DNA of 64,000 bases from NCBI GenBank assembly GCA_035084275.1, contig CM068751.1, positions 20,708,001 through 20,772,000 of the forward strand, read 5' to 3'. A program made the translations under genes and the position numbers. Source of the stretch: Hydrolagus colliei. Its lineage: Eukaryota. Positions 10,301-64,000 of the stretch are shown in pieces (the first letter of the stretch is position 1; each line of letters begins with the position of its first letter). The notes below the pieces were generated by a model. That model was not told where the DNA came from. It worked only from the letters and a program-made list of their open reading frames with translations, and searched no databases.

Positions 10301-13300
10301 TACAAGTTACAATTAATTCCATTGCGTAGAATTATATGGGAACCAGAGAGCATGGTTTAGTTAACACACTGTAGAAGTCAAAAATAACTGCAGTTTGGGG
10401 AAACAATATTCACACAAGTGTCTTGGAGAACCCTGACTACAAGGTCTAGTTAGAGTAACACATCAGTGGATAAGTGACACAAAGGTGTAACCCACCCCCA
10501 AATCATTTGGTGCTCTCTGGAAATAAAAGGATCTTTTAAATGTTCAAGCAATATATGTACAGCCTTATATTACTACAAATTGCAAATTGTAGTTGTTAAA
10601 TTGACATTGTTATTGTCAATTGCAAATTGAAATTGTTATTGCAGATGCTCAATTTTTCATTCCTTGTCTGTGCTGAGTTAGAAAAGTTGTTACAATTTAT
10701 CTGATTGTTCTTATAAGCTGTTATAATTTACATTAAGTACTAAAAAGGATTGATAATGTGACACTGAACCTAAAGGGCGCACAGAATTAATCGAGCATGT
10801 TTTATGGAAATATTACTTGTCGAATTCAAACACTGAGCAATGATAGATTCAGTCATCTCTCACGGGTTATTTATCAGAAGATGTGGAGGACTCGGGAACA
10901 TGTGAATGATTCATTAACAAAGCCTGAACTTCTCCTTGTCTTAGGCTCAAGTTTCTTTCAGGACAATCAACCTCTCCATACCCCAGTGGCTCTGAATCTC
11001 ACTGTAGTACGCTTATTGTCACCTCGGCAGAGATGAGTTTGGCATTGAACCTTGGCCACTATGACCAAATGGAGTAACTTATTAGTTGACAAATGACACA
11101 ACGGTGGGCTCCACCCAAAGATCATTTGTAGCCATTGCCAGAGGGAGGGCGACTGATTGTGGATGAGATCAAATATTGGTGTTACCTGTGAATCCTTGTT
11201 TACACGTGCAACTGTAGTTTCCTGCGGTGTTGGTGCAGTCGGCATTGGGTGGACATGGTGAGACAGCACATTCATCAATATCACTGCAAAGTATTCCATT
11301 GCCTGGAATTATGTAGAAACCCGAGATCAGGGTTTAGTTTAACGCAATGTGGAAATCAGAAATAACTGTTTGAACATTGGGGAAACTCATTGCACACAAA
11401 CAGCAAAATGATCCCAGTGAGCTGATACCATGCTCTATGGAAACAAAAGAATCCTCAAAATATTCAAGCAATATATGTAGAGCCTCATATTACCCCTGTG
11501 CAAACTGACATTGTTATTGCAATGGCTCCATTTTTGATTCCTGGTCTGTGCTGAGTTTTCAGAGTTGTTAGAATTGATCTGATTGTTCTTTTAAGCTTTT
11601 GTCATTCACACAATGTCTGAGAAATAGATTGATAACGAGACACTGAACCTGATTGACCCACAGAATTAGTCGAGCAGGTTTTAGGGAATGACTAATGATT
11701 ACCTGAAAATCCTGCATCACAGGAACAACTGTAGTTTCTGATCAAGTTGGTGCATGTTGCGTTCTGGGAGCATGGATTCATGACAGTGCATTCATCTATA
11801 TCTGTTGGGAAATTTCAACGAATGAAAAAAAGATAGATTAGTGTGTATTTGCAGCGATCATATCGTGTGAGTGCACAGAATGCTTTCAGTCTAGGATAGC
11901 GCAGAAGTCTATCATTGGCTCTTTACATAATCCATTGTACAATGGGTGTAGGTTTCCACTTTAGCGTTCCCCAAGACAGCTCTATTCCCAATACCAGCTG
12001 TGCTGTTATCCTGGACACAACTGCCCATTTACAAAGTCCTGGATAAGGAATACCGTCCTGAATATAAACAGTATTTATTTGTGCGATTGCAGCGAAAGGT
12101 AAAGCCTCGTATTTAAGAGTAAACATGATCACGCAGGAAGAGAAGGGTTTGGAGTGTTAGACAAGAGCGGATTGGGAGTGGTGGAGATGCCTTATGCAGT
12201 ATAAACCCTGACAGGTATTAATTGGGCCAAATGCCTGCTTCATACCGTATCATTCTCTGTCATTCTTTGTGATACTGGTTGCAATTACAGTTCTTTTCAA
12301 TGTTCCTATCATTTGTGATGTATGAAATGCCCCACGCAAGTGAAAATTGGTGTTACAAACTTTGTGGATTGCTGGAAATTAAAAGGTGAGTTACCTGTGC
12401 ATTGTTGTCCGTCCCCACTCAATCCCGCAGGACAGAGACCACAGCCAGACGAGTCACTGCAGTTTACCCCAGGGAAACAGCTGACAGTCTGACACACTTT
12501 GGTTTTAGTCTGACACTCACTGCCACTGAAGTTAGAATTACATCTACAGCTCGCTTTCTGCGGGAGACAAAGGCGTTCAAATGCAGATAAAAGAAGTCCT
12601 TTTGAGTTGTGTTCCTGATGGACAGGATGGCTCATTTGATAGCACATTTGATTTAGGATCAGATGGTTGTGAGTTCAGGACTTTGATTAGTAAGTCAACT
12701 GAGTCCCAAACGAGACGCATGACTTGATTAGTATATCTACACTAGTCAGTGCAGTGCTGGGGTATGTTAAATTGTTGAGGGGCCAAGCATCATGTCAGAT
12801 GTTAAACCGTCTGACTGTTCAGGTTAAAGATCCCATGGCATTATTTGTCAAGATGCCTTGGGATGTCCTCCCGATGTGAAAGGCACTTCACAATGTAACT
12901 TTGTTGTTGCGAAGGAAGATTCTCGTTATGACCTGGCCGACAATCCCCCAGATAATATTGGTCATTTACTTCACAGCTGTTTGCTCAATATAGTCATACG
13001 CTTTACACTGAATCACTTTAAGATGGCCTTGTGACGTGAAAGCCGCTACATCAAATGCCGGGATTATTATTTATTATTTACAGTCTCTTGAACGAGATGT
13101 GACTCATTGATGGTAGAGACTCAGGTGATGTTTAGTCTGCAGGTGGATTCCATCTCATGACAACAACTCACAACCAGGAGCTGGTGTGGGGATCCAGTTT
13201 TGTTTTCCCATTGTAAACAGGGAACGTTGTAGGGTTGACTCTGACAATAATAAACAATAATAGTAATCCTGGCACTTGATAGCACCTTACCATGTCATTG

Positions 13301-16300
13301 AGATGTCTCAAAGCACTTCACAGGATGTATTTAAAGTGCATTGACTGTACTTTGTGGTAGGAGAGAACAGCTTATCTGTGCACAGCTCATCCCAGCCAGA
13401 TAATTTTTTAACGTGATTATCTAACGTTTTACTGTGATATAAGGGGCTATGAAACTACAAGTTCCTTCTCTAGAACTCTGTGATGTTCAACTTTGGTACT
13501 ACAGGGCTAAATTGTCCTTCATCATCCATAGCCTTTGATGCTTAGCTGTCACTGATTGAATTATTTCATTGGTAATATTGGCACTTTTGAAGGACCTATA
13601 GCAATGTTTGTTAGATGGATTCATTATAACCAAGTATGCTTCAATCGCATACGAATAAAGTATTCAGTTTATACTCACGTAAAGGGAGGATCCGTTGACT
13701 CGCAGAGTTTGGTTCACATTGCACTCCCCGTTATTATTGCAGTTGCAAAGCACAAATCTGGGATTAATAACTGAAAGTGCATTATTGGATCCAATTGCTT
13801 CAATTTCAAACAAGAATCCATCTGCACTTCTTGGGATCCAGGTTAACGTTCCATTTGCTGTGGGATTCAAAACAAAGTTGTTGATGGAATGTATTTTGAA
13901 TAATTCTCTCTTTATGGATATTCTGAAGATGAATTATTCTCCAAACCTATGGCACTTTTTTCAATCTGATTTAAGGTTTTACCTTTCCGAAATTCTATTA
14001 GTTGAGGTGTGTTCTCATTGAGGTGATGCTGGTTAAGTGTAGTACTCAATGTATGGGTTACTGCCAAGTTTGCCATTCCCAGTCTTTATTGAGCAATTTA
14101 TTCTGGGTTTCAGCAAAGCCAGGTGTTCAAGCATTGATTGGTATGTTTACTTTCTCTAATGGGCCTCTAACAGTGTTGGGGGAAAGATCATCTAAATGCA
14201 AGTTCTATTTCAATTCAGCAATAATTCCAGCTACTTTGATTCCTGGTTTTGAACAATGAAAATATCACATTGGTACAGTGGAGGAGGCAATTTCCTGAGG
14301 TTAGTTCTCAAAAAAACATGTTTTTGTCAAAGAGTAGAGAGAACTTTACTCTGTATCTGGACACAATCTCACTGACCTGTAAGCATTGATGTTAATACAT
14401 GGTGGGCACAAACACACAGTGAAATTTTATTTTTGTTAATCTTCAATAAAAATATCACTGGACAGACAATTGGAGCAGATGGTTTTACATTGAAAATTGT
14501 AATTTAACTCATTACCTGTTAGATTCAAATCTTGGGAGGTTTTAGCTGTAAATGTAACATTTCCTTCTGCTGCGTAGTAGGAAATTATTTTCTGCAACAA
14601 TGTCCCTGAAATACGTTGGTTTCCTTGAATAACTGGTGGGAATGAGCCTAAAAAGAAAAGGGTATTTGGTGAATGATATAAAATAGAAAGAGAAATAGAG
14701 CTTTTGTAATTATAAAACTGTAATAGTTACTTATTTTGTGATTGATGGTTAATACTGGAGTAACTTCTGATATTTAAGTAGAGATATCAGTGATATCACT
14801 TACAAACCAAATATTAACTTGCTTGGAACTGCTGTAAGTCTAACTAAATTTACATTGGTTTATAAATACAAAGCTTATTTTAATTAGATCACCCCTGATC
14901 CCAACCCCCAGCTAGGATACTCTTCCTTGACTGTCCTGCACTTTGGGACATCCTCCCAATTTGAAAGGCACTGTACAAATGTAATTTGTGGTGGTTGCTG
15001 CTTACGTAGTACTTTATTCTCTGCTTTGAAGGCTTTGATTTGGTTTGCTGTGGCCAACCCAATTTCTTCATTCCCTGTAATTAGTGCGTCAAAAATACAT
15101 TGTGTATTATTGCTGCACGCTTCGGCAAATTTTTCATAGTTAGGATTGGATTTGAGTTCATTCATAAAGATGGGTTGAAATGTGGTGTTGCGATTCCTCG
15201 TTAATCCTTTGGCTGTAAAAAGGAATTGGTCAGCGGGCACTGTCCCTGTTGCAATAGAAAGAGAATAATCGATTAGTTCAGGTTGATGGGTGTTCACGGC
15301 TACTGCAACAATTATTTGTGTAGAGATGTAAAACAGTACTTTTCTCGTGAAAATGTTTAACAAGCTTTCATTTAGGTGTTCACGGTATCATCCCATCTAG
15401 TTGTGTAGCGTACAATCTGGTTCACCAACAAATGAATGCGTGACTTTCAATTTCCACTATAAAATACTCTGCTGTAGGGTTGACTGAACATTTGCTCTGA
15501 AACCACTTTCAGACAGGCTCCAAAGCAAACATGGTTGATGTTGAATCTTATCAATGAATTTCTCTGGGATCAGAATGATCTCCCCTCTTGGACACATTAG
15601 CATTGTACTCACATGTCTCCCCATAATTGTAAATAGCAGATTCAGGGCTGTTGATGGGTATCATGGAACCGTTTGGCATTTTCAAGTCATCATTAGGATC
15701 ATTGTTCCATAAACCTGCAAATAGACAAACAGTCAAACAATAGTTGGCAATGAGCTTGGATTTTCAATAACCATAATTAAAATCCGTATATTGTTGCTAA
15801 ATTTCCCAAATATTGAATTGAGGAATATGATACAATCATTCTTGCCAACATTTAGACCTTTTTATCACAATGGATTTATGTTATTTTATAACGTCAGAAA
15901 TTTACTATCAATCTATTTATTTATCCTCAGTGACTGGGGAAGGACCAAGGCCAACAATACAAGGCACCGATTTGGGGGAAAAAGCCTGACAAACACATCT
16001 GCTCCATGGAGGAACGGAAAACTGAGAAAGGTGAGTAAGATCCGTACATGAGGTCCTGGAAAAGAATGACTTATTAGGTCATAGGTGGAGCAATTACATT
16101 TGATTTTAATACAGCGAGCAGAAAGGTTACATTGTCTGGATAGTGTATTCTGAAATTGAAATGATTAACAGAAATCAATTGCTATAAACAATTCATAAAA
16201 TAAATACAACAAAGATCTGATGGAGAGAAAGGCTGAAGTGAAGAACCATTTACTTTTTGTGAGAAGTTACGAATTAAAGCCAACAAGTACCAGGAGTGAA

Positions 16301-19300
16301 GTGTGGTGTGACATTCCCTCAATTCAGAAATTGGGATTGTTTGCAGAACTACAGAACATGAGAAACCCTCGTATTCTGGAACTTAGTCTTGAGTTTTAAG
16401 AATATTTTATGGCTCATAATGAGTCAAGCACAGGAAGTGTCAACCTGGGGACTTAGACTTTGGCCAAGTTTCAGCCTGAACCAGTATCAGTAAATATCAG
16501 GGTCCACAGCCCAATGGTTTTATAATTATAGTGCAATAGAACTGGATTATACTGCGTCAACAATATACTCATTTTGAATCTAGTTGCAAGGGGTAGGAGC
16601 TAATCTCTGTCATTTGAAATGTAGCTTACCGAGTAGTCCTTCTGTTTTGTTCAGGTAATCCTCAGGTAAGAATAGTGTGAAGCTTAGCATGGCAAATTTT
16701 GCTTTTACTGTGAGTGAAATCCCTGCATCAAATGTAGCTGTGATCGTTGATCCATTCGCACTCTTTTCCAGGAAAAAAGCCCCTTCCTCATAAATCTCTT
16801 TACTGGTATCTGCAACAATGACATACATGCTCTTAATTTGTTATCGATTTTCACATATTCTGCTTTGATAAGCAAGTACCCAGTCACAAACTTATATCAA
16901 ACACATCAGTCTTGTTGGGAGGGAAGTGTAAAGCAGCTGGAAATCCCCATACAGCAGTCCCCAGAGCTCTGTCAAACCACACTGCTATACGTTTCCAAGT
17001 TTGCCAAAGTCTGTACGTTTCATTTAAATCTGTTTTGCTCTTCAGCTTTATCAACAGCTGCAAAATGATGGGATTCCTCTGTGTGTCACCAGGATGATTC
17101 TCGGCTCAAGACTCTCTTCTTCAACGGACCTCATCGGCAACTCCTGATCCCCCCCCTTCCATTCCCCCCCACCCAGTCCTCATTGTTGTTTGCTTACTCA
17201 ATAGTGTCAGAAATAATAAATTAGGCTCACCTTCAGTAAAAGCCACAAAGGTTACATTCTGGCCGTTCAGTAAGACATCAATGGATTCATTATATTTTAA
17301 AATGAACTGGACCTGCAAAGAAAGTACATATCTTTAACCTTCAAGCCATAAACTGTTGGCCGTGTTGAGTTTGTCTGCACAGTAAGATGAGAAGTTGAGT
17401 TTGATTTCACACCTAATCTTTCTGATGGATTTAGTGAGTTACAAGCTTCACATGTAGAATCAAAGCAACTCTTTACTTCTGGAGCTTGGGTTCACAAACC
17501 GCTTAATGACCCAGATTAATGGATGGAAATGAATAGTTTGGACAGTTTTAAACCTATTTGTGGTAGGTGTGTGTTCACATTTAAAAAAGGTGCAACAGGT
17601 GAGCATAAGATTGGAAATGCATTTGTACTTCTGGTTCAGAAGGCCAAATTTATTGCTGGTTTGAAATGGAAAAGTTCCCCGGCCGCAGGCTACACACTAG
17701 TTACTTTTACTAACTTCTTAAGATGTTATATTAAAAGGTTACTCACTGTGGTATTAATTGTGGACAAATACTGAGCTGCAAATGCCATGAAGTTTGTGGC
17801 TAGAGCCACACCGGTTCGTTCGGTGAGACCATGCAGCTTAAAAATGGTTTTGGTGCTGGAATCCTTCACATTGCACACTATGTAGTTACCAAGACCATTA
17901 AATGTGTAGTCCAGTCCATCCAGGGTAGTGAAGTGAGGATCTCCAAGCATCCTGCCTGCAATAATACACAGAAGCAAACTGAGGGTCCACTAATGATTAC
18001 ATCAAATACATATTAATCGGGCAAATGTTATCTCAAAGCCAGCACTTTGCATGCTCTTTCTCCTCTCCTCTCTCACTGAGGTAAAGATCATTTGCATTGT
18101 CTCCTAACTGATTCTTTCCTGGACTTCAAGATTGTGAAACTCAATTTTATTTTGTGTTTTTCAGTAAAAGTTTATATTGGATAAATGCTGCTTTACAGTT
18201 TTACTTGGTTAAACTCCAACAGGAGTCAACGCAAACTCTGGGTCCCCAAATCTTTTCTCTTGCCAACCAGCGCCTAATACTCTTTAGAATTTGGTAAGCA
18301 GTGTGTCTTTCCAGGGAAACAATTTGCATTTAATTTGAGATCTTGAGCAATTTGATGTATAGGTTGCGTACATCAACAACAAGCTACATTTATAGAGCGC
18401 CTTTCATGACTCTTAAGCATGGTGATGTGTTTCCCCTGTGTCAGACACCCAGCTGACCAAAGATAATTGTCCTGTACTTTCAAAGGGAAAATTTGCAGCT
18501 AAACGTAGAAACAGGAGAAGGCCATTCAGCCCCTCAAGCCTGTTTCACCATTCAAAAAGTTTGTGGCTGATCTGTAGCTCAAGTCCAATTCCTTCCCTTG
18601 CCCCGTGTCACTTAATACCCTGATCCAACAAATATCTATCCATCTCAGTCTAGATGTGAATGGAATGGCTATGGGGTAAGAACAGGGCAGTGGGACTGAA
18701 CGGACATATCTTTCAAAGAGCCACGATGGACCGAATGGCCTGCTTTTGTGTGGTAAGCTTCTATGATTATATGATGTTTACCAAACATCTTGTGCAAGTT
18801 TCACACTGATCCAGTGCTTTGGGACGTCCTCCTGACATGAAAGTCACTGTACAAGAAAGCATGTTGTTGTTGTTGGTGGTGGTGGTGGTGGTGGTGGGTA
18901 AGGACAGTGTAAATTTGCACAGGCAGCAATTCTAAAGTATTCCGATGAAGGATTATATTTCAGTGATCAACTTGATAGATACTTTGTTTTACGTCACATA
19001 TCATTCTTTGCAATGCTCTCTCTGTACAGGGGGGGGGGGGGCGGTATTTGAGGCCTTGGTTTCATGTTTGCAGTCTTAAACAAGACTCACTGATTTACGT
19101 CAGCAATAAAAATTAAACATGACATTTATTATGGTGTTTCATGTGCTGTAAAATTACCTGAAGCTGGTGGTGTGTATCCTTGACACGTATCCTTTGGTCT
19201 TTTCTGCTGATAATAGTCACAGAACGTTGGGTCTGCAATCTTTCCGCAGCACCAGTCGTGTGGATCTAGGTCGAATTCTATCCAGGAAGATTGTTAATCA

Positions 19301-22300
19301 ATAATATAAATTATATACTTTTGTCATGAGCAATAGATCAATAGAGAATTAATTGGGCACAGAGGGAGTAGAAGAATATTCCATAATTTCAAATGAATAC
19401 ATACGCTGGTTTTTGGTTGAGGATGTTGAATTTCTGAAGTATCTTTCCTGAAACCCTTCAATGAGTGCATTCTTTTTGTTGTAAATGCATCTCAGACCAG
19501 CATTAAATGTGTTTGGAAGAGTAGGACGGAGAAGTTTGGTTGACCCTACTATGGAAATTCAACAAGAGACATTTAGTGTTGGTCATATGTCACCAGAAAA
19601 CACACTGTGGTCTCCTGATTGATTAAATGTTACTCAGATTTTAGCTAAAATAAAGCATTGGTCTCAATACTGCAATTCAATCTGCTTGTTAGGAGCCATG
19701 TTGTTTTGTTGATTTCCATTGTGTTGCAGAGAGAAAAGTAAGATACAGATCATTCTCACTTCCATCATTGGTCAATATGTATTTAAGTAAAGTAACTGGG
19801 CAAAGGGATATTTGTAATTTCCATTCAGGATTCAATTCTAAACCAAACTAGATTAATGAGATGAAACCACCACAGCAACAACTTGCATTTATATCGCGCC
19901 CCTCACTCAGGGTAACGTCCTGGAACACTTGGCTGTGATGGAGAACACACAGAGCCTGGGGGAGATGACTGTAGGTCGGGGGGAAGAGGAAGCTGTTCAG
20001 TCTCGATCTGAAGATGGGGAATGAAAGGGCAAGGTGCAGGGATATAGGAAGAGTGTTCCAGAGTTTGGGAGCAAAGCGGCTGAAAGCGCAGCCACAGATG
20101 GTGCAATGTTGGACACGAGGGACATGCTGGAGACTGGAGCCAGTCAAGCGGAGGCATCGGGTAGTGGGTTGCGGACTGAGCAGGTCCCAGAGGTAGGGAG
20201 GGGCAAAGGCACGAAGGGATTTGAAAACAAGTGAGAGGATGTTGAAATCGATCCTTTTGGCGATAGGCAGCCATTGGAGCCCGGCTAGAACTGGTGAGAT
20301 GGTGGGTGTGGAGTTAGTTTGGGCGAGTGTGTGGATGCAGAGTTTTGGATGAACTGGATTTTGTGGATGGTGGAGCTGGGGAGAGTAGCGAGGAGACTAT
20401 TTGAATAGTCGAGGCGGGAGGTCACGAATGCAATGATGAGTGGATGAAAGTCATCTCTGCCTGTTGGCAGCAATGTGAGTTGAGTTTGGATCATTTCTTA
20501 TGGGTGTGGGCTCATACACAAAACTACTATTAATTTGACCATTTCAGTCCGAGTGGTGATAGAATATCACACTGTACAATGGAGACTGAAATCTCAGAAA
20601 GGTGTGTACAGAAGGACTGTTTATTGTGCATTTAACAGCAAAAAGTTGTATTTCCCAGGAGAATAATCACTTACCTTTAATGAGAGAGAAACAAAAATCA
20701 CCATAACATAAAAAAACTTACATTATAAACATTAAAAAAAAGATTTTTTTGAGAGATATAAAGCCAGCAATAGTAAATGATCTCATTTTTAAGCCATGTT
20801 GGAGATTTATTTTTCCATCCTTCTAACACTGTCAAGCCTGTCCTTTCAGACTGAGGGAAAATCACTCTGTAGTTTAACTGTTTCTACATTTGCTTCACAT
20901 ATGTTAATTAGTTCAAATTCAAGATTGAGTTACCTAAAGCAGTTAAGAAAGAAAAAGGAACTCGTTCTTTATCTTCAATAAACGGTTGTCGGAAACATTA
21001 CCTGATTTGAAATTCCGGAATTGTTTGTCTGGCACTCCTTGGCTAAAAGTACATGGACAGGAAAGTAAAGCCTGATTCCATTCCAATGGATCTGGTTCTG
21101 ATGTAAACCAGTTCAGACACTCTGCTTTGTAATTCCTCTGCGGACTGCCTCTAGTTAGGTTATATGCCCAGAGCCCTGTCCGACCTGAAGAGTGAAATTA
21201 AAACAGGAAAATAGTATTCAAAAGTTTGGGATTAATATTTGCAATATAAATATTCGAGTTACTGTATATAGATTTGCAATTAGAATCTGTACTACTGTCA
21301 TTTAAAAAGTATGCTATAATCGAAACTTAACTCAAGATTTTAAAAAAAAACTGTTTATGTTCTCTGTGAAACAGATAGTGAGGAAATTGTCTTTGCAAGT
21401 TCTTTGTACGGATGAACAAACCTGTATTTGTTCCCAGCTCCGTGTTTGGACGAAACCTCTTCATCTCAGGAAGATTTGATTGTTGGTCATTCACAAAGTA
21501 TCCGTCTCCACTGTAACAGAGAATAAACATTCAGGAACTATAACCTTACAGTAATTATGATGGGATGACTTGGATCGAATTAGATTTTTGAAATTATCTT
21601 TGAGCTCAGTTCAGTAGTAACCAAGCTTTTTGGTCGGCCAACCAAAGACATGTTTGTTTATTGAACATGGGTCGGGACCCGAGGCTGGGAACCACTGGGA
21701 TAATACAATATCATACTTGGGGGGTTAAAAGTACCTGTTAAAACCTATGAGAACATTTGTGGAAAGTAGCTTTGTTACGTCCCAGTTCATTCCGTCACAC
21801 TTGTATAATATGAGAACAAAGGACTGAGTGCCGTCTGTACTTAACACTGCTTGGAAGGTGTTTGTCTGAAAAACAAGATGGCAGCGTTTGTACCTGGATT
21901 GTATGGACGCTGCTCTAATACAATAGATTGTTAAACAAATGATAAAACAACATAAATAGGATATGCAAATCATAACATAATGCATCATCCCCACAGCCCT
22001 CTGCAACCTTGTCCAAGTGGTCAATGATCATGTATTAGTTCATGTTGGTGAATGTGTGCACAGGGGAGATTCAGAACAGAATCTGATCTTGGCTTCACTT
22101 TTAAAAGAGAGGTAGACGTTTATTTGGGGAGGACGGAATTGCGCGGTAACGGGGAGAGAGAGATGGGCAGTGAGATTGAGTTGCTCTTTTCAAAGAGCCG
22201 GCACAGACTCGATGGGCCAAATGACCTCCTTTTGTGCCGTAAGATTCTATGATTCTATGATTTACCCGATGCTCTAAAATGTAGAGTTTTGAGTGTCAGT

Positions 22301-37300: not shown

Positions 37301-40300
37301 CTTGGATTTACATAGCGCCCTCACTCCACTCCAGACAGCGTCTCAGAGCGCTTCACAATAACAGATCCCGGGCCACGGTGGAGGGGAAAAAATGTGACCG
37401 AAGGCGCGGTCGAACAGATCAAACCCATCGCAGAATGCGGAATGCAAACACATATGATAAAATCATTGGTACCTGTGATAGTGATATCTGTAGAATTAGT
37501 CAGCACTGAAAATGTCACCTTATCGTCATTGGCATCAGTGGCAGTAAACAGAAAGTTTACCTGCTCGTCAAGACGGGTTTGAAAAGTGGTCATTCCAGTG
37601 ATGTTGGGTGGGAAATTATCTGTGGAGTGTTCACAGTTACTATTCACATTGCCANNNNNNNNNNNNNNNNNNNNNNNNNNNNNNNNNNNNNNNNNNNNNN
37701 NNNNNNNNNNNNNNNNNNNNNNNNNNNNNNNNNNNNNNNNNNNNNNNNNNNNNNNNNNNNNNNNNNNNNNNNNNNNNNNNNNNNNNNNNNNNNNNNNNNN
37801 NNNNNNNNNNNNNNNNNNNNNNNNNNNNNNNNNNNNNNNNNNNNNNNNNNNNNNNNNNNNNNNNNNNNNNNNNNNNNNNNNNNNNNNNNNNNNNNTGTTC
37901 TGAAATTAAAACAAATGAAAATGCGGAATTTTGTCAATGTGTAAATGCTAATACTGTAGCGCGGTGAAATATTTAAGGCCAAAACTTACATTTATACCGT
38001 TCAAAGTGCTAATGCGATACTTTGCAGGGCAGTGACAAGCCACTAACTCTCAGCGTACGGCACTGAGATCTGTTTTTTGGTGATTTATTTTGGATATACC
38101 TGTCGAGTATCATTTGATACACTTACTCATTGTACTATTCTGTGCTGCAAAAGTTGTGACACTTTGCAAGGTCGCTGCTCCAAAAGAAAAGTCGTCTGTA
38201 CTTAAAATATCAAAAATGCAATCATCATTCGCTTTGCAGGTTTCATTCGCTTTGTCAATTTTCTGTTTATCTGTCGTTTGCAACAGTTCATCGTAAAACT
38301 TGGGTACGAAGCTATTGTTGTTGTAGGTGTACCAGTCATCTCCGTTGTATGTAAACAGGCTGTTGTTCTCGGTCGTTTTCCCTAAAAGATGTTTGTGACA
38401 AATTTATAAGAACATAAAGTAAGAAATGAGTACACGTAGAGATGATTCCCATCTCCAGCCTTTACCCACTGGGCCGTTGGAGAGCCTCAAAAATAGCTTC
38501 TAAAGTATACCGTTTATTGCCTTACATGTCAAGCCAAAATCAAAGAATATCTCATTGTCGCTGGGCAACTGTTTCCCGTCGTAGTTGAGATACGTTCCAT
38601 TCGCAGCTTTGAAGTCGTCTGTTACGTCATCGTTCCAGACACCTGGACACAGATGGAGGAATGGCAGCACATCAGAAGCAAATATTAATTTCTGAATGTG
38701 ATTCTATTGATGCGTACTTGTAATTATCTATAATTATCCCTGTGTTTGAAGCGCTCTGAGACCCCGTCCGGCGTGGAGGACGCTATATAAATGGAAGTAG
38801 TTGTTGTTGTTGTTCTATATCTCCGATATTCTTAGACATCTCAAGGCACTAAAAGTGAATTTGAAATTCAAAAATATGGATGTAAATTGTCGTTGTGGCT
38901 CCTTTTCACTGAGTCTTTAAAGCAGGAACCAGACATTCCAAAGTTATACTCCTGCGACAATAGCTTCAGCGGAAGTTTCCAAATGATTGGCGATTACGTA
39001 ACTAGCTCTACCGCTAAAGATATACCGCACTGTAAGTTGGAAAGTACATCTTACCTAAGAGTCCTTCAGTGTTGTTTTTTAAATCGTTATCTAAGGAGGT
39101 GGTGAAAGTTAGAGCCCCCTTTCTTCCTGAAACTGTCACCGATGTTCCGCCTTCAAACGTCGCCACTGTCTCATTGTTGCTGACCTGCAGGGTTACTTGA
39201 TTGATGTAAGTTGAATTCTCTGTAAAGGACAAAGATCACAGACAGAGTTCAATGTTGACGCATTCAAATAATGGAATAAAGTATTTTCGCTTGTGCTATG
39301 AATGGAATAGCACAGTCTTCTTCAGATAAAATCAAAGCACTCTTAAGGTCATAACATAATTCTGTGGAAAATGCAAACTTAGTTTGGTTGGCAATCAACT
39401 GTAAAATCTAATAATGTTTCAGATCCACATTTTAAGGAGTAAATACTTTGCTATATTTGCTTGTTGTACGTATGCAGACTGCGAGTTGACTGTGTGTGAA
39501 GGAGGGCAACCGTGAACTGACATTTCACTTACCTGTGACATTCACAGCCGATCCATCCACAAACACGTTAATCTCCTCATCACCAACAAGATTCCACTGA
39601 ATCTGAAGGAAGACATTCACATATGCACTTGCAGTCGATCAAACACAAAATATGACATATTTGTCGAGGCAAAAATAAACATTTCCTTCCTTGCCTCTCT
39701 TCTCTTAGCAACAACATGGTTTAAAGAGTAAATTTCCCGCTGCTTTAGTGTCAATCATTAAGAAAGAAGAAAATGGAAAGACTAGTAATTTTGGTATAAT
39801 CTGATAGACACAAGCACTATCTAACCTTCACCACAAAGTTCACAGATAGTCATAGTAATGCTGGAAAAATTGTTCATTTCCTTCCATGCCTTTCCCTATC
39901 CGAGCAATCTTGTTCCCGATTAAATACTTATCTCCTTAAGATAGCGCTGCTGTTAGATTTCAGCGCGTTTCAGTTATCTCGCACAACAGTAGTTAAGCCA
40001 ATCAAAGAGCAATGTGCGTCATCTACTGTCATAGCCACCCATCGTTACCTTAGATCCACCTGGTCCTTGAGCTGCCAGGGCTACAAAGTTGGTTGCCTCA
40101 GACGTCATGTTTTCCCCGGCTCGCAAGGTTCTTCCCTGGAGAGCAAATACCACTGTATCGTTTTCATCTTTCACATTTAACAGGATAAACTCGCCCAGAC
40201 CATTGAACGTGTACTTTACATTGTCCAGCGACACCACGTGAGGGTCTCCAAAGAAGAAGCCTGTGAACAAGGTTAGGAATCATTTACTGGGTATAGTTGT

Positions 40301-43300
40301 GTCACGCGAGAGCCTCAGAACTTAATGTAATCCTCCTCCACCCATTGCCTTTTCTTAGCCCGTCCATTAAACAATGGGTGTAGGAAAAGGGACTCAAAGG
40401 ATTGCTCTCAAAACAACTAGCACAGACTTTTTCTGTCCTGACTATGGTTCTAAATTTAATAATCTGAGCGCTAAATAAAGAGGTGATTAAATACAACAGC
40501 AGCGACTGTGAGAGGAATTTTTCCCTTTCTCTTCATTACATCCCTGCCTATTGGTTTGTTGATGCTGATGCTGATGTTAAATGCATTAAGATGCCCAGTG
40601 TCTATGGTCTCATCAGATCAGCAGGTTCTGGATTCAATTCAATATCATCCCCTTCTGGTCCATGATGAGTGAGTTAACTGTTGTATATTAACTTTAATAA
40701 CATAAGTGGTAATTAAATATGGGACAAGTACATAAGGATTCTGGGAAGAACTGCTTGAGAGAGTTTGAGCGAGAGAGAGAGAAAGAGAGAGAAAGAGGGG
40801 ATTGGAAAGAAGCTGGGTTGTAAAGTTGCGTTTTAATGGATTGGATCGAATCGATATTATGTTTTGTGGATTAAAACGACATTAACCGCAGACAGGAAGT
40901 CAAGTGAAAGGCCCATAACTGAGGTCCTGTGTTATAACTACTATTATTTGCAATGATTTGGGTCTATGGCATAATAAATAACGCTTTCTTTCTAATAGCA
41001 TAGTACTTTTAGCAAAATATTATGTTGTACCGATACGAGGAGGAATGTATCCAAAGCAGTAGTCCAGTGGCCTCTTGATGCGGAATAGTGAACAGTAAGC
41101 ATAGCTGCCCGAGTCTCTGCAGCAGTCATTGTACGGATCAACTTCATTCTCTAAAGACCAACAAAGGAAAGTAACAAGTTAAATGAAGAGAGTCTGTTAT
41201 ACGCACATAGGTTAAGATTAGATCAGGACGCAGACAGACACTTGGTAAGAATAGACATTGTGAGAAACTGACTGACACAGAGAGATTGGCATTTACTTTT
41301 CTCAGGTTAGAAATATGGATGCAAACATACAGCTCAGGTAAATTTGTTTCCTTTATACGTTGGAAAGATGATTTGAAAGAAACACAGGAATTCGATCGGT
41401 AATTTGGCTCACCCTTGTATTGCAATCGCAAACGTGGCACGACAACGTTCCAAAAATTGCTCCAGTACGTGTTATAATATTGTAATCCTCTCCACCACCA
41501 AATCCACCAGTTGTAATGTGTCCATGGTGTGGGGAGAAATCGCTCTGTTTCCCCGTAAACCAAGCCTCCAAACCCTGAATAGTAACATCTGACTCCAGAA
41601 CCAAAGAAGTTGGGGAATCTGTTCTGCATCGTGAAATACAACCCTGGGAGTGGGGGGGAGAAACACAAACATTTATTATTCTCTCCCCATACCTAATTTA
41701 AGACGAGGATTCCTTGCCAAGCAATCACCTGCTAATAGATCCGCGAGCAAGCCTTACGTTTCGGTATAATTGCCTCTACTAGAAGTTAGAGAAGGTAGAA
41801 ACGAGATGAAATGTGTTCCCTGGTGAATCCACGCCTACAATCCAAATGAGGAGTTACAACCAGTTGAGCTGATATAACAAAAGGCATGTTTGGAAATTAT
41901 AATATATTGTATTTTAAATGTAGTTGATACCTACAAGCAGCTAGTGATTTTAACCTTAATTATCTCAGTTTAATCCTTCAATGAAAAGGGCATATTTTGC
42001 AGAATTGAATCCACTCTCCAATGGTGCAAAGAGCTCTACAAATGAAGGGATCATCTTTTCATGATAATAATAATCCTTACATTTGTTCTCGTGTCTTTGA
42101 CGTGCGGAAGAACAATCTCCATTTGAATCAAGTTGCTTAAACTTAGACGATTGTCACCATTAACCCTTTAGTTGTGTTTAAATTGTTGCCTTTCTTGAAA
42201 AGTCACCGCACCCAACAAAAACAAAGTTTATTTTCACACCACTGTTTTGTTGATAATAAGATTCCAAAATAGGTTAAATCATTACCCTGTGCGTCTTTAA
42301 CTTCAAATCCGTAATATTGTATAATGCCTCCCCAGGTAAAGCGATTGTCAAATATCGCCTGCCAGAAAGAGCAGGGACAGGGATTGACATTCCTGAATAG
42401 ATAGGGCTCATTTCTATACCAGTCCAAGCATTTCTGTCTTGGGTTTCTCGTGTTCTGGGTATTTTGCTCCAGTCTGTAAGCCCATCTTCCTTTCTTTCCT
42501 GTAAAAACAAAACGCCAGCAATGAAAACAAAACAAACAAAATGAGCAACTTCCTTCCACCTTACACGCACTGCAAGTGAGATGTCGAAACAAATTCCTGT
42601 CTGTGTGAGCGTTAAAGATTCCATAGCATTATTTGCAAAGAAGAAAGGAGATTATTCCAGTGCCTTTAGCGACAATTCTCCCACATACAATTGGTCATTC
42701 ACTCCATGGGAGTTAATTGGCTGCCGCAGTCATCCATAAAGCACACATTGACATAACACTACAGTCCAGGGGAAAGGTTAAGGCCACAGATATTTTCTAA
42801 AGGAAACGTATCTCGGAAGTTTGAAATAGAAAGACAGCTTTAAATATCCTTGAGGGGAAAAAATATCTGTAGCACTCTACTGAAAGCGTTCACCTGCATC
42901 CTTTTAAAACAATACTATTGATTAATAGATTGGAGAAATATTAATATGACATACCTGTGTGATAGCCGATGGATTGATCTGGCCGATATATTTTTGCAGG
43001 TGATACAGAAAACCTGGTTTGAGGGTCGTTAAAGGCTGGAAAGTTGATACCGGTGTTTGAAAATTTGGACCCACTACAAATGAAAAAAGGAAATGTCTGA
43101 CACATGTAGAGACATGAGAACACAAGAAATAGGAGCAGGAGTAGGCCATTCAGCCCATCGAGCCTGCCCCGCTATTCAATCATGCCTGATATTCTATAAT
43201 ATACTGCAGATCCCTCTAGTATTGACTGCATTCCAACATTCTGTTGCCAAACAGATATCTTAGAGCTAGCCCAGCACCAAGGACATCCGTCTTACATATC

Positions 43301-46300
43301 TCCCCAAAGAGGTGACTGAAGACAAATAGATTTGTGGAATAGGTGACCGGGAAATGACCTGAGCAGAGAAAGCACCAAATGGCTCATAAATACCTATAGT
43401 ACCCCATTAGGGCATAGTTTCTATAGTAAAGTCTTGAATTGTAATTCCAGTTCATTCCACCATCTTTAAATTGAATGAGACAAAAGGAATAGACCCCATC
43501 TGTGGTCAGAATTGCCTGGAAGGTGTTTGTCTGCAAAACAAAATGTGTTCAACACATAATTATCATTCTAACATTACCTAATTAAAAAAAGTCAAAGTCC
43601 ACTTGAGGAATAGCCTATTGAGACACAATGATTACAATCTTTATATCAGGGAATCTAGATACTTTAAATCAGATTTCACTCTATGAACAATTTACCTTTT
43701 ATATTTTTGGGAGGATGAACTTGAAAATACTGTACATACGATGTACAAGTGAATTCATCTAGCATTGATGAATGTGAAACAAATATAATAGGAGTAGAAT
43801 AAAGAGAGAAGGGGAAAGATAAGACAAACCAAAAGTCAGAATTAAAACTACTGTACTGACCATTTGATTATTTTTAATCAGAATAATATTTTTATGTATT
43901 CAAATAAAAAATACATTGAAGTCTATTCCTTCTGCAGTATTACTGCAATATTAATGATTGTCTCAGTTCAAAGGAAATTGTTACAAAAGCAGTCAGTGAG
44001 GCAGGAAGTCGAGAGGAAGTCAAAATGGAACGTTTTTCTCTGACTATTTGTACCATCAAATAAGATCGACAAGATCTAAAACCTCAGACACTATTAGAAG
44101 GTAAATACATACACTCAGAGGATCTCTGTTTGCATATCCAATGTAAGGGGGCACATCCTCCCAGGTAATCTTGAGGGCCCATTTAGGTGTGAAGGTTTCA
44201 ATGTCAAGTGTGTAGTAACTATTTACTTGTGCCTCGATGTCATTCTGGAGTTTCTGACTGTGAGAATCACTTCTGGCTGAGAAATCGTAAACCTGAAATG
44301 GGGCAGAAAGTTAGTGTTTCCATCGGCTCTTTTGACAGATACACAGCGGGTTCCGTGAAATGAGACATTAACTTGTCAGAATCAAAATAATCCCATTATA
44401 AACAACATAAGAGTTTTTTCTTATTGTTGTCGTTGTTGTTACACGAGGGTGTAGGAGAGGGTGGTGGGTGTGGGGGTTGGGGTGGGGTGGTGGGGACCGC
44501 TCAGTTGGAGGAGTACTCGAGTATTGCCATCAAAGCAAGTCAAGGTGGATGGATTCTGTCTTGTCCACGTTCAGCTGCAGATAGTTTGGTTCTATCCAGG
44601 ACTTGATGTCAGACAAGCAGGCAGACAGGATGTTGGTAAAAACTGGGCTCACAACTAACGATATGGGTGTCATCCACATACATGAGTCCTGTAGATCAGT
44701 GGTTAGAGCACTTGCCTTGCAAGCTTGAGAGGCGAGGCGAAGGGACTGTGGGATAGAATTTGGGGGTAGAAACCATTTCAGGACAAATGGTGCTGGTGGG
44801 TTATTTCAGCTTTAACAGACAGTTATATATAAACAAAAAAAATTCCAGGCAGGGTGAAACCTTAGGCAAGTTTCCTTACTCTACACGCCTAATAATAATC
44901 CCTCTAAAAATATTTAAAAAATAATAAATAGGTCATTTCAATCCACGACTGTTTGTTTGTGGGTGGGGGGGGGGGGGGAGATGCTGCTGTGCGCAATTGG
45001 CTGCCGTGTTTCGCCCACCTATATACAGTCAGTTCATTTTACAATATATTCTGTGAAGTGCTTTGAGGCATCTGGGAGACGTGAAAAGCACTATATCAAA
45101 TGCTAGGATTATTATTATTATTATTACAGCAAACAACAAAATGACATTTATAGAGCAGCCTTTCACATTGGGAGGACATCCCAAGGCACTGAACAATCAG
45201 GTTGGCACCCGAGAAGGGGCAAGGGCAGGGTAGGGGAGAAGGGAGGGAGAGAGATAGGAGGGGAGGGAGAGAGTTGGGAGGGCAGCAGAAGGCACGGTCG
45301 AAGAGGAGGGTCTTGAGACCGGCCTTGAAGGAGGCGAGGGAGGAAGCGAGGCGAAGGGACTGTGGGATAGAATTTGGGGGTAGAAACCATTTCAGGACAA
45401 ATGGTGCTGGTGGGTTATTTCAGCTTTAACAGACAGTTATATATAAACAAAAAAAATTCTACACAACCAATATGAAATCTGATTCTACATACCTGGTAAT
45501 ATATGGCTCCAATTCCTCTGGTTAAATCTGCATCATCCCAAAAAGCAGCTATCATTGGAGGTGTCCTCAGCGAGAAGTATTGACTGAATCCATAGAAAGT
45601 ATAGGGGTAGCGATATTGCACGTAGGAGTTATGTCTTTGAAATAGGATCAATCCATTGTCTGAAAACTATGCAAAGAAATTTCAATTTTAACCAGCTGTC
45701 TGTTCTGTCTTTTTTTTAATAATGAACGTAGTACTTTTCAAAAGCAAAATGTATGTTCGGAGAAGATTGATTTTCGGTTAAGGAGGCATTTGTCCTAATG
45801 TTATCGCAATTCTTATCAGGTGTATATGCTGCCTCGGGATCCATATAAGATCTTGTATTTCTATTATAATTTGCAGCTGTTTAGTGCAATAACAATGTAA
45901 GTATGGAATGAGAGGAATGAGAAAGTATCTTTCAATCTATCAAGTTTATTATTTCCATAAACTTTGTACAATTTACATTTTAATCCATTAGTAGGACAAG
46001 GAGCCCTTTTACATAGTTGTGTAAAAACTATCCAATTCACCCTTGGATACATATCCACTCTTCAATGCCTTCCCACTGAGTCTATAGATTTAGATAATCC
46101 TTTTAAATTCTGCCCCACATTCTGTGTCGTGGATTATCTCAGGTATAGATCCCTATAATCTGTATTCCTATCTCAGTATTTCTGGCACTAGGTACCAATG
46201 TGTTAAATGGATGGGCTTATCGTTATTTGGATAAAGATAGTGTTTATTGTTTCAGAGCCTTTAGAAATAGCAACATTGGTCACATTTAAAACAACAAGCT

Positions 46301-49300
46301 CCAATATATATATATATGTATATGTATATATGTATGTGTTTCAAGAAAACAAGAAGTAAATATCTATGACAGAGGTTTGCCAGGAATCTTGCAAATGAAG
46401 AAACAAAAAAAACAGGTTTGAATGAATGTGGCTGATAATTGTGATCTTTTTATCTTCGGGGATTTGCAGTCATTCAGAACTTAACCTCAGAGAATACAGT
46501 GGGTGGTGTGAGAAAAGGGTGTGGATGGAAATAATGAGCCTGAAGGGACAAATCTTTCTTCCCTTTTCTTACCCGTAAAATTAGCAGTTGACAAAGAAAT
46601 TCTTAAACTTACATATACTCTGTAGTAGAACGAATCATCAAAGGGAAAGCCATTTGGGATGTAGATGATGGGAGACACAAAGTCACGACTTCTAACTTGG
46701 AGTTTAATATCTCCATATTCTGCTCCATAGCCAAACAGCCGAATCTCTACAGAAAAAAAAATCAGTGAAATAATTGGGTCCTTTACAAACAAATGATTGT
46801 TACAATGTTCATGGTGTTCTACGGATTCCAGCGTAAAAGGACAGAACCATCGCATATCAGATCAGATTAATCAGCAATGACATCATACTTATAATAAAAA
46901 TTCAACATATCATTCGAATTAAAGTGCTTTAATTTGACACAATGCTTCACGCCCATAAATGCAATTGATGTTGTCATTGCACCTTTTTAAAGATGTGTAA
47001 AACTCTCCCATTTGTGAATGTGGACACAATTTGTTGACAGTGATGTCACCGACAAACCCATGTAATTTCCCGATTTAGAAGAAAAAATTGCCTGGATCAA
47101 ACGAATATCCCAGAACCTTCCCACAGAGTGGACAACAACAACTTGGATTTATATAGCGCCCTCCACGCCGGACGGAGTCTCAGAGCGCTTTTTTGGACGC
47201 AAGCGATGGAACCGAGTGCCAATATCTCACAAGAATTCTCCATGCAAAGGTAATACATTTATTCTCCTTAATTATGACAGACATCTTACATTACATCATC
47301 AATATTTCTCTCTTGCAAGTTACTAAAGGATCAGTGTTTGGTAATATTTCACTAAATCAATTGTTTTTTAAAAAAATATCTCTTATGAAACTATACCTCT
47401 GCAAATGATGCCATCACCTTCGTACCCTTCCTTGCAGGAACATGTGAAAGACCCCAAAGTATTGTTACATATCCCGTTATCCCGATCACAGTTGTCAGTC
47501 CGCTGGGAACATTCATTGACATCTGAATAGGAGAAGAAAATCCCCAAATAGCTAAAGTTAAAAATTAAATACCGGTAGTTAAACAAAATTGTCTTCATGA
47601 ACGTTAATTATCAAATTGGAATCAAATTGAAAGAACGTGTACCATAGTCTCATAAGCATAGTTACATTAAAGACAGTTAGTTAAATAATTTATAAAAGGT
47701 AACTCACCGAGTGACATCTCAATCTATAGAATAACAACAACAACAACAACAAATTACACTTATAAAGCGCCTTTCACGTGGGGAGGACGTCCCAAGGCGC
47801 TGGACAGGAGGCGTGTGACCCGAGCTGGGAGGGGAGTGTACGGGAAGGGGTGAGACACAAAGGGGAGGTCGAAGAATTCGGGGGGGAACAAAAGGCACGG
47901 TCGAAGAGGAAAGTCTTCAAACCGGCCTTGAAAGAGGAAAGGGAAGAAACGAGATGGAGGGATTGCGGGATGGAATTCCATAGGGTCGGAGCAGAAAAAC
48001 TGAAAATGATGAACTCATTCCTCAACAACAAAAAAAAAAGTTCTGATTTGCATGGATTTAATTGTGTTCAATTCCATAGAGTAGTTTCAGGCTAAGAAAA
48101 AGTAGCATTACATACAGTACAGTATTAATGATATTTAATAATTCCGTATGAGCGATTTTATAAACAGAATTGCTCTTCACTTTGCTCCAGTGTGGAAATA
48201 TCAGGTCTCTGTGACCCGATCATGGCAGCTTGAATTAGATTGATCTTCCCACTCTGTGTCACTACATTCTGTACGCTATTACAATACAGTACTGTATATC
48301 GTGCTTCAGCTTAAACCAATGCTGCGTTTATATTGAACCTCAGGTTACATCTACATTGCTAAAAGATGGCGATTTTTGACCTGCTGCACACAGTAATTCA
48401 TCTAGAAGCAAAACAGCTTCACTCCCATCCTATAAACACAATTATAATAATAATAACACTTGCATTTGATATAGCACCTATTACATGTCAAAGCGCTTCA
48501 TAGAAGTTACTGTAAAGTGAATTGACTGTATTTCTGGGACTGTACCTGTCTGGCAGCTCTTGCCTTTCCAGTTGTTCTGGCAAAAGCACCAATAGTCATT
48601 AATCTGGTTCACACAGAACCCATTATGTTGGCATGGAGAGCTGTGACAGTTGTCAATCACTGTAATTGCATTTAAAAAAAAAAGTTAATTAAGAAATTGT
48701 ATCTCGAGTGAATCCCCAGAAGCAAATCACACACACACACACATACATACATACACACACACATATATACATCCACACACACACATCCACACACACATGC
48801 ACAAACACACTTTCCAGCAAGTGGAGGTGGGGTGGGGCTAAGTCAATACATAGAACTTGCGCAGCAAAGCTGCCCTTAACAGTAATTCTCTGATTGCAAT
48901 GTGTTAACATAGACTCACCTTGTGTACAGAGTCTACCAGTATATCCAGGAGCACAAGTACAATTAAAAGCATTCATTAAATCTGTGCAGGTGGCTCCATT
49001 GTAACAAGGGTGGCTCTGACAATCGTCGATATCTGATGAACAAACAAATTCAATGAACTATTTCAGCATTGTCTGTTTCTGTAATGGAAGGCAACTCGGT
49101 GGAATATAAAGGCATGAAAAGATTATCAATGTATATTATTACTAAAGCACCAAATGTACAGCTACGTTTATATTGCTTAGCTCAGGTCCACCTCATTTTT
49201 GAAGCATAGCTATTCTCGAACACCGAGTAGGAGTTACAGTTTTGTTTATTGAATCAGAGAGTTTATATCATTGTCTGTAAATACTTTTGAAAAACCGCAG

Positions 49301-63748: not shown

Positions 63749-64000
63749 CTGTTGCAAAGATGGTTCAAAACATGAACAAGAAAAACAAGTGTTCTTGTTG
63801 ATCAAGTGGGAGATGCTCTCAGACATGGTTTCATATGTAGAGCAAAACCACGATGATGGAACATATGTAAGGTAAGCAAACATGTGGGACATCATAGCTC
63901 AAATCTCCCAAATGGAAACCATCAAGTGAATAGTGTTGGTACCTGTTGTTAAACTTGTGATGCAGATGAAGAGATTACATGTGTAGATGTGAGTGCGCTA

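Follow-up and report, generated by a model that had tools for sequence, protein, structure and literature searches.

Here, we identified two diverged copies of a 16-exon NIDO-AMOP-VWD cassette of the MUC4 type on the minus strand of a 64-kb window of the Hydrolagus colliei genome (GenBank assembly GCA_035084275.1, contig CM068751.1, positions 20,708,001 to 20,772,000; the window is the whole stretch of DNA that was analyzed, and positions below are counted within it). The upstream copy, cassette A, belongs to a type designated c1, and the downstream copy, cassette B, to a type designated c2. It is likely that both cassettes are parts of a single gene, which would encode a very large type-I transmembrane mucin, and that this gene fills almost the entire window. 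In the six-frame translation, nearly the whole minus strand reads as one modular extracellular gene: mini-exons rich in proline, threonine and serine (PTS) are followed by two fibronectin type III (FN3) domains, EGF modules, c1 (NIDO-AMOP-VWD-C8-3), eight calcium-binding EGF (cbEGF) modules, an inner PTS exon, c2 (NIDO-AMOP-VWD-C8-3), further EGF modules, a SEA-like region, one more EGF module, a transmembrane (TM) segment and a tail. We favor a single gene because the linker between the cassettes is frame-compatible, only one TM segment is found, start and end signals between the cassettes are no more frequent than by chance, and concordant models exist in at least 18 species. Judged by its exon matches, the gene is the orthologue of models named 'mucin-4', 'mucin-4-like' or 'uncharacterized protein' in Callorhinchus, sharks, rays and amphibians, and we infer that both cassettes would be translated in one chain.

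The exon structure had been proposed in a first-pass annotation, which was made from the sequence letters. Each exon was examined as a unit flanked by AG and GT, of exactly the claimed length and with an open frame; all 16 exons of cassette A and all 16 of cassette B passed (Table 1). Cassettes A and B share one series of offsets to the first complete codon (2,0,0,0,1,2,2,2,2,0,2,2,2,2,2,0), and intron phases are thus identical; each cassette is in frame internally and has phase 1 at both ends. The description of two diverged 16-exon cassettes with matching phases and comparable sizes, starting and finishing in phase 1, is therefore accurate. When the minus-strand open frames of region A were compared with those of region B by blastp, 17 matches were obtained (E<=0.01), 13 of which were colinear and fell on 13 of the 16 exon pairs with 28-52% identity. 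As a control, A frames were compared with the plus-strand frames of region B, which gave six short matches, none of them colinear (five involved A frames of the repeat-rich stretch 45419-44941, and the sixth the frame 38831-38727). Exon-wise global alignment showed the cassettes to be 38% identical (293/769 residues), with equal cysteine counts in 15/16 exon pairs. The earlier proposal of an old duplication behind two diverged, intact MUC4-type cassettes is supported. One difference between the cassettes concerns exon 7, which has 231 nt in cassette A (41413-41643) versus 141 nt in cassette B, the extra part being rich in Trp and Tyr. Exon A7 is 75% identical to the Callorhinchus model (P0002, residues 1-70; P numbers denote database proteins), 67% to that of Carcharodon and 44-49% to frog models; thus, the insert is conserved among c1-type AMOP regions rather than peculiar to this window.

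Searches with the window gene used single exons or single open frames, and Pfam was likewise applied to individual exons of the cassettes. In both cassettes, exons 2, 3 and 4 each match NIDO (PF06119) with scores exceeding the cut-off (E 1.7e-5 to 1.2e-10), and together they span profile positions 6-147 of 186. VWD (PF00094) was detected in exon 9, above the cut-off of 22.9 bits in cassette B (28.0 bits, E 3.1e-6) and just under it in cassette A (21.4 bits, E 3.4e-4). The Mucin-4-like C8-3 family (C8-3_MUC4, PF23263) was matched by exon 13 with 44.8 bits (E 7.8e-12) in A and 52.8 bits (E 2.3e-14) in B, the cut-off being 25 bits. The domains named in the first-pass annotation were recovered in this way for NIDO and VWD, together with C8-3_MUC4, in both cassettes, while AMOP (PF03782) matched weakly and in exon 6 only (E 0.012 in A and 9e-4 in B; below the 25-bit cut-off; profile positions 2-39 of 143). 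This weak match is no evidence against AMOP, because the same profile also misses vole and bird MUC4 at E<=0.01. AMOP has eight cysteines, and exons 6-8 contain eight cysteines in both cassettes. The tetrapeptide GDPH occurs exactly twice in the six-frame translation, once in each VWD exon (A9 and B9). With PTS stretches (27495-25987 and upstream PTS frames), EGF exons and one C-terminal TM segment (exon 3667-3455) all present, the MUC4-type features found here comprise NIDO, GDPH-VWD, C8-3_MUC4, PTS, EGF and a single C-terminal TM.

All seven EGF exons in the linker between the cassettes are of phase 1/1 and match EGF_CA above the cut-off (7/7; E 1.2e-7 to 5.3e-22). The inner PTS exon is of phase 1/1 as well, and the frame therefore runs without interruption from A16 through the EGF modules and the PTS exon to B1, in accordance with the earlier claim that eight cbEGF repeats and a PTS exon join the cassettes in phase. 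GC skew is +0.46 in 26001-28000, which covers nearly all of the inner PTS exon, and the end of this exon together with exon B1 aligns with the 'TTTLPST...LLDYG' junction of the Callorhinchus model.

Some further properties of the inner PTS exon were also observed. Between 25954 and 27551, all three minus-strand frames are open for approximately 0.4 to 1.7 kb. In one Callorhinchus model (P0151), the first part of the PTS exon is translated in a Q/P/H-rich frame, the counterpart of an alternative open frame in the window; either this model is frame-shifted or another acceptor is used.

Alternatively, the window may contain two tandem genes, namely a secreted protein with PTS, FN3, EGF, c1 and EGF modules that ends just past the last linker EGF, followed by a true MUC4 with a signal exon, PTS exon, c2, EGF modules and TM segment; the continuous frame would then be a by-product of modular phase-1 exons and the fused database models would be predictor merges. 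We consider this arrangement unlikely. If the donor at 28770 is read through, the frame closes within six codons, and a transcript could terminate at this point. A signal-peptide-like ATG exon with a phase-1 donor, located at 28496-28400 shortly before the inner PTS exon, may represent an internal start; its position is that of the signal exon in amniote MUC4. The second half of the window gene alone also has the layout of amniote MUC4, in which a PTS exon precedes NIDO-AMOP-VWD, EGF modules and TM. However, signals of this kind are not concentrated between the cassettes. Exons that start with ATG, encode a hydrophobic core and end in a phase-1 donor number two in the 1.27-kb intron before the PTS exon and one in the intron after it; the remaining linker introns (5.5 kb) provide a background of five start sites. 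The second of the two candidates, as well as the sole AATAAA (27793), is located in or at the edge of a very high-copy repeat (27761-28183). Generic hydrophobic stretches show no enrichment (3 in the 9.3 kb between the cassettes versus 37 in the 54.7 kb elsewhere), and the TM family motif FFGILFG occurs once in the six-frame translation, at 3574, downstream of cassette B; it is shared with vole MUC4 and with every orthologue examined for it. In this respect, the first-pass reading is supported, and the signal-peptide, TM and polyA signals in this interval, being chance-level candidates only, were rejected as evidence for two genes.

The 27761-28183 repeat is an interspersed one, whose summed contig depth is in the millions in the DNA sequencing run X1, with hundreds of joints and loose ends. 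Related frames resembling short interspersed elements recur at about 48067-47777, 45419-45099, 35703-35530 and 4628-4163.

To place the two cassettes among known proteins, exon A9 (70 aa) was searched with phmmer against 1.84 billion representative sequences, which yielded 635 matches (E<=0.001). Six of the seven best matches (P0002-P0007) contain two matched stretches each; they are Callorhinchus milii 'mucin-4', Carcharodon carcharias 'uncharacterized protein LOC121292663', Pleurodeles waltl 'mucin-4-like' and models of Anomaloglossus, Nanorana ('mucin-4') and Gastrophryne. Two NIDO, two VWD and two C8-3_MUC4 stretches were found in each of P0003, P0004 and P0151. Exons of cassette A score best on cassette 1 wherever a model includes it, and in the fish and salamander models (P0002, P0003 and P0004), cassette 2 gives the highest score for every exon of cassette B that has a match; in three frog models, one or two B exons (B11, and also B13 in P0005) score slightly better on cassette 1. 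The closest model is that of Callorhinchus (P0002), with 71-91% identity for A7-A16 and 55-88% for B1-B16. The Carcharodon model (P0003) is colinear with the window from FN3 (residues 84-260) to TM (3279-3343), and the FN3, SEA-like, EGF, TM and tail frames of the window match the same models in the same order. Exon by exon, the window thus appears to reproduce the order of the two-cassette models, in which c1, a run of cbEGF modules, c2 and one TM segment follow each other.

A second search, using cassette 1 of P0003 as query, returned 60 proteins, 46 of which were new. The c1-then-c2 order was found in 14 of these 46, in addition to P0002-P0007 and their cluster members, and together these models represent 18 species: seven cartilaginous fishes (Callorhinchus, Carcharodon, Stegostoma, Scyliorhinus torazame, Pristis, Hemitrygon and Mobula) and 11 amphibians (Pleurodeles, Lissotriton, Ranitomeya variabilis, Anomaloglossus, Engystomops, Bufo, Pyxicephalus, Xenopus tropicalis, Rana temporaria, Nanorana and Gastrophryne). 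The records include NCBI XP_ models, UniProt-only entries and submitters' own annotations, and presumably come from independent pipelines. Models with c1 only were found in lampreys, lungfish, caecilians, Xenopus laevis, Chiloscyllium and Cetorhinus, and models with c2 only in Rhincodon, Mustelus, Rhinatrema, Ranitomeya imitator and Polyodon as well as in all amniote MUC4 rows. No c1-type cassette of an amniote was present among the best 150 of the 635 A9 matches (30 of them named) or among the 60 matches of the c1 search.

Several observations weigh against a single gene, beside the start candidate and the early stop mentioned above. A search for sequencing runs containing the locus gave the DNA run X1, in the form of contigs, and no RNA run. 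Among transcript-derived fragments, a search over the junction of linker and c2 (a 240-aa piece of the frog model P0218) gave one match among 102 candidates, an unrelated EGF protein of a coral, which supports neither side. Gene predictors can merge tandem paralogues, and the models differ between species: some have c1 only, with a TM segment of their own (Chiloscyllium P0010, Stegostoma P0214 and others), and others c2 only. Such single-cassette models fit two tandem genes, but several of them look truncated, because their borders fall inside the linker: the c2-only Mustelus model P0048 has no signal peptide and begins within the last linker EGFs, and the c1-only Cetorhinus model P0153 ends in the linker EGFs without a TM segment. 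In favor of a single gene, fused models are present in all three kinds of record, and a frame-compatible linker is kept in both cartilaginous fishes and amphibians.

Some of the differences among models could also arise if the window holds one locus that is expressed mainly as one-cassette isoforms, through an internal promoter upstream of the inner PTS exon or through skipping of phase-1 blocks, with the full chain being rare. Every block border, whether of cassettes, EGF exons or the PTS exon, is of phase 1, and many isoforms are listed in the database; yet all those listed for Pleurodeles (X1-X5) and Anomaloglossus (T1-T6) retain both cassettes. The caecilian Geotrypetes has a c1-only 'mucin-4' (P0016) whose TM segment and tail nevertheless resemble those of the c2-only model of another caecilian (P0092), and the PTS stretch between the cassettes varies in frogs, being absent in Ranitomeya (P0218) and short in Pyxicephalus (P0223). 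However, some one-cassette models come from separate paralogous loci, such as Chiloscyllium P0010, which has a different TM segment and tail, and the 'fibrillin-2-like' model of Pleurodeles, which has a different tail. A predominance of one-cassette isoforms thus appears rather improbable, somewhat more so than two tandem genes, and a single gene encoding both cassettes remains our preferred reading.

The possibility that a mis-join or a duplicated haplotype in the assembly created the second cassette is contradicted by the evidence at hand, and we give it practically no weight. The window does contain one gap (Table 1) and recent-looking tandem copies of 1,217 nt at 11333-8738. However, the cassettes are only 38% identical in protein, and A and B are each orthologous to a different cassette in other species, in the same order. 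Contigs of X1, which may itself be the source of the assembly, cover 30/30 bins of 24800-29000. The gap falls within an intron, between A13 (which ends at 38127) and A14 (acceptor at 37619), and 35 nt of intron separate it from the acceptor. In the orthologues, the stretches matching A13 and A14 are contiguous (residues 300-386 and 388-435 of Callorhinchus P0002; 1215-1301 and 1303-1350 of Carcharodon P0003); therefore, no exon is expected inside the gap and the reading frame is independent of it. The gap is thus harmless and the feature is a real, intact gene.

The relationship between the two cassette types was investigated using a maximum-likelihood tree of 33 cassette segments, all of which came from database proteins, with the window cassettes left outside (890 columns, LG+C20+F+G4, sea-star root). 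All 33 rows were retained, and the long-branch warning of the program concerned two outgroup rows only. In one clade (100/99), MUC4 of vole, bat and birds grouped with the c2 cassettes of cartilaginous fishes and amphibians. In a second clade (99/99), three lamprey proteins were sister to the c1 cassettes of jawed vertebrates (100/100). A clade of jawed-vertebrate c1 and c2 without lampreys was rejected by the approximately unbiased (AU) test (delta lnL 22.8, p = 0.0017). These topologies indicate that c1 and c2 are ancient paralogues. Because the B exons match cassette 2 and cassette 2 groups with amniote MUC4, cassette B is, on this evidence, the counterpart of the mammalian and amniote MUC4 cassette. 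Cassette A appears to be of an older paralogue type, c1 being also the cassette of the lamprey relatives. Conservation is higher in c1 than in c2: Carcharodon and Stegostoma are 84% identical in c1 and 74% in c2, and Carcharodon and Pristis 77% and 58%, respectively. The tree also revealed extra recent c1 copies in amphibians (Pleurodeles P0168 and Gastrophryne P0018).

Based on these relationships, we tentatively propose, as a possibility somewhat short of even chances, that jawed vertebrates ancestrally had a MUC4 in which a single chain carried two paralogous NIDO-AMOP-VWD cassettes and was self-cleaved at two GDPH sites, forming a three-piece complex. Amniote MUC4 would be a shortened descendant that lost the slower-evolving c1 with its FN3, EGF and PTS parts and then gained a signal peptide in front of the former inner PTS exon, and the split between c1 and c2 would predate the divergence of lampreys and gnathostomes. 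Two features of the analysis count against this dating: c2 sits on a long stem (0.52), and the group submitted to the AU test was named after the tree had been seen; the placement before lampreys could thus be a long-branch effect. As regards the origin of the two-cassette gene, each half consists of PTS, cassette and EGF modules, which suggests that an entire MUC4-like unit was duplicated in tandem and that the upstream unit then lost its membrane end.

Additional multi-cassette and single-cassette relatives were noticed during these searches. In the lamprey Petromyzon, the c1-type cassette is present twice in P0216 (4,647 aa; residues 326-1178 and 3067-3915), and the second copy is preceded by FN3; either lampreys too possess MUC4-like proteins with several cassettes, or tandem genes have been merged in this model. 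Lampetra P0230 (2,323 aa) was noted alongside it. The top match of the A9 search, P0001 (7,101 aa), contains about ten tandem cassette-like units of 25-31% identity, and P0024 (2,597 aa) contains two. Repeated NIDO-AMOP-VWD units in one chain thus seem not to be confined to vertebrate MUC4.

With regard to function, mammalian MUC4 undergoes autocleavage at the GDPH site of its VWD domain, giving an alpha subunit that is O-glycosylated and a beta subunit that has EGF modules and is bound to the membrane. By analogy, since GDPH stands at the start of each VWD, the two-cassette chain would be cut twice, at both sites, and the resulting three pieces would be held together non-covalently. The O-glycosylated PTS domains of the glycocalyx barrier would reside on the two outer pieces and the membrane anchor on the innermost one, so that a three-part complex would set two long PTS stretches above the membrane. 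Skipping of exon blocks, which is possible because all exons at block borders are of phase 1, or an internal promoter could also give rise to one-cassette forms.

Among known proteins, Callorhinchus milii 'mucin-4' (XP_042195169.1, here P0151, 2,666 aa; older model XP_007898813.1, here P0002) shares with the window the series c1, eight cbEGF modules, PTS, c2, EGF modules, SEA-like region, EGF, TM and tail; its TM exon is 83% identical and its tail frames match. Its models start inside cassette 1, however, so that the FN3, EGF and outer PTS parts of the window gene have no counterpart in them. The Carcharodon gene LOC121292663 (P0003, 3,410 aa; P0154, 3,452 aa) has the c1-before-c2 order, which is also shown by the models of Stegostoma, Scyliorhinus torazame, Pristis, Hemitrygon and Mobula, but the Carcharodon gene is less similar to the window, with identities of 52-86% in the A exons and 41-71% in the B exons. 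Elasmobranchs possess, in addition, a c1-only locus with FN3, a c1-type cassette and its own TM segment and tail (P0010 and P0213 in Chiloscyllium; P0214 in Stegostoma). Amphibian 'mucin-4-like' models, including those of Pleurodeles (P0004), Lissotriton, Xenopus tropicalis, Bufo, Rana and Ranitomeya, likewise have c1 before c2, about eight EGF modules in between and the TM motif AFFGILFG; they differ in a linker PTS that ranges from none or short, as noted above, to long, and in the extra c1 copies. Amniote MUC4 (vole P0053, bat P0072, birds P0066 and P0082, lizards P0250-P0252) has a NIDO-VWD-C8-3_MUC4 cassette that groups with c2, PTS before it and EGF modules, as well as FFGILFG in the TM segment of the vole protein, but only a single cassette.

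More distant families share fewer features with the window gene. Gel-forming mucins (MUC2/5/6/19) are built from repeated VWD-C8-TIL units and a cystine knot, whereas no TIL or cystine-knot family was found among the Pfam matches of the tested window exons or of P0003, P0004 and P0151. AMOP, matched weakly here, is also a domain of SUSD2 and isthmins. SUSD2 also has VWD, its order being AMOP-VWD and then a sushi domain, and it is not known to have NIDO, which is present in both window cassettes. Sushi (PF00084) and thrombospondin type 1 repeat (TSR) families were absent from the Pfam matches of the orthologues P0003, P0004 and P0151. The abstract of PMC12000326 describes AMOP as a key feature of ISM1.

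The first-pass annotation regarded the double-cassette architecture as undescribed. This claim fails, because two-cassette models are already present in public annotation across the seven cartilaginous fishes and 11 amphibians, including the nearest relative, Callorhinchus milii, where the gene is called 'mucin-4'. In the full-text literature, on the other hand, no paper on a double NIDO-AMOP-VWD MUC4 was found, supplements, which might show the domains of Xenopus Muc4, lying outside this search. A passage of PMC4948705, citing Lang 2007, names Xenopus tropicalis as the most deeply branching animal with a Muc4-like protein. Two other candidate papers were rejected: the 'two NIDO domains' in the relevant passage of bioRxiv 10.1101/2020.07.27.223107 refer to DEX-1 of C. 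elegans and not to MUC4, and the mention of MUC4 seen in PMC9578598 is not relevant to a double cassette. Thus, the window gene is a real, intact orthologue of an annotated gene type for which no published description was found. The part most worth writing up would be, if true, the two-cassette ancestral MUC4 with loss of c1 in amniotes, and no account of this evolutionary scenario was found in the literature searched.

The distinction of two ancient cassette types provides a frame for the confusing names 'mucin-4', 'mucin-4-like', 'fibrillin-2-like' and 'uncharacterized protein': c1 and c2 stand in tandem in one model in cartilaginous fishes and amphibians, and only c2 survives in amniote MUC4. 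MUC4 is a much-studied mucin of cancer and of epithelial barriers, and to our knowledge clear functions are still lacking for its NIDO, AMOP and VWD parts. Comparison with a naturally occurring form that has two cassettes and two GDPH sites would be useful in this respect, although such a form represents an insight at the level of annotation and no new kind of system.

Table 1. Features of the MUC4-type gene in the 64-kb window
Feature	Positions	Strand	Details and evidence
Outer PTS region	56249..64000	-	many short repeated exons, borders predicted; repeated T/S/P-rich open frames, positive GC skew
Two FN3 domains, upstream of cassette A	53514..55132	-	Pfam fn3, E 2.3e-6 and 6.1e-10; match Carcharodon P0003 residues 84-260
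EGF-like exon run, upstream of cassette A	47386..52876	-	EGF-like open frames; Pfam applied to last frame 47607-47386: EGF_CA, E 1.5e-12
Cassette A (type c1), 16 exons	34249..46746	-	2,640 nt, ~880 aa; lengths, AG/GT, frames, Pfam
Cassette A, exons 1-8	46746-46613, 45666-45493, 44292-44113, 43530-43394, 43073-42955, 42498-42286, 41643-41413, 41150-41031	-	
Cassette A, exons 9-16	40260-40049, 39602-39533, 39219-39055, 38642-38526, 38381-38127, 37619-37473, 36157-35973, 34429-34249	-	
GDPH motif, start of VWD-1	40238..40249	-	exon A9
Assembly gap, 241 N	37655..37895		inside intron 13 of cassette A
Linker, 7 exons, 8 cbEGF	28770..33345	-	33345-33220, 32988-32866, 31925-31806, 31339-31100 (two EGFs), 30725-30603, 29362-29240, 28898-28770; borders, phases, Pfam
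Inner PTS exon	25987..27495	-	1,509 nt, 503 codons, phase 1/1; rich in Thr, Ser, Ala, Pro
Cassette B (type c2), 16 exons	12395..24983	-	2,394 nt, ~798 aa; lengths, AG/GT, frames, Pfam
Cassette B, exons 1-8	24983-24850, 24120-23959, 23163-23017, 21865-21735, 21510-21422, 21184-21002, 19545-19405, 19277-19158	-	
Cassette B, exons 9-16	17955-17747, 17312-17231, 16809-16630, 15714-15613, 15245-15006, 14647-14516, 13857-13679, 12557-12395	-	
GDPH motif, start of VWD-2	17933..17944	-	exon B9
EGF exons, downstream of cassette B	7583..11814	-	open frames; EGF_CA/EGF_3 for 11814-11695 and 11333-11172; weak EGF_2 for 7816-7583
Membrane-proximal part	3455..7151	-	SEA-like frames 7151-6963 and 4887-4651; EGF 4159-3851; sole TM exon 3667-3455; match C-terminal parts of P0002, P0151, P0207 and P0003

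The window has a G+C content of about 40%, its sole run of N is the gap listed in Table 1, and it contains nothing besides the mucin-type sequence from which MUC4 synteny could be judged. The 5' end of the gene is located outside the window, the outer PTS region running past the window edge. The checked cassettes and linker encode approximately 2,509 aa (sum of exon lengths), and the earlier estimate of more than 4,400 aa for the whole protein is plausible. For the two SEA-like frames, Pfam gave no family, and the term 'SEA-like' denotes resemblance only; these frames (4651-7151) are conserved in the C-terminal part of the cartilaginous-fish models with 33-60% identity. Downstream of cassette B, three near-identical minus-strand units with a spacing of 1,217 nt (8738-11333) each contain the same cbEGF exon (11333-11172, 10116-9955 and 8899-8738), and two flanking frames are identical or differ by one residue among the units. 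These units represent either a very recent tandem duplication or a collapse or expansion in the assembly.

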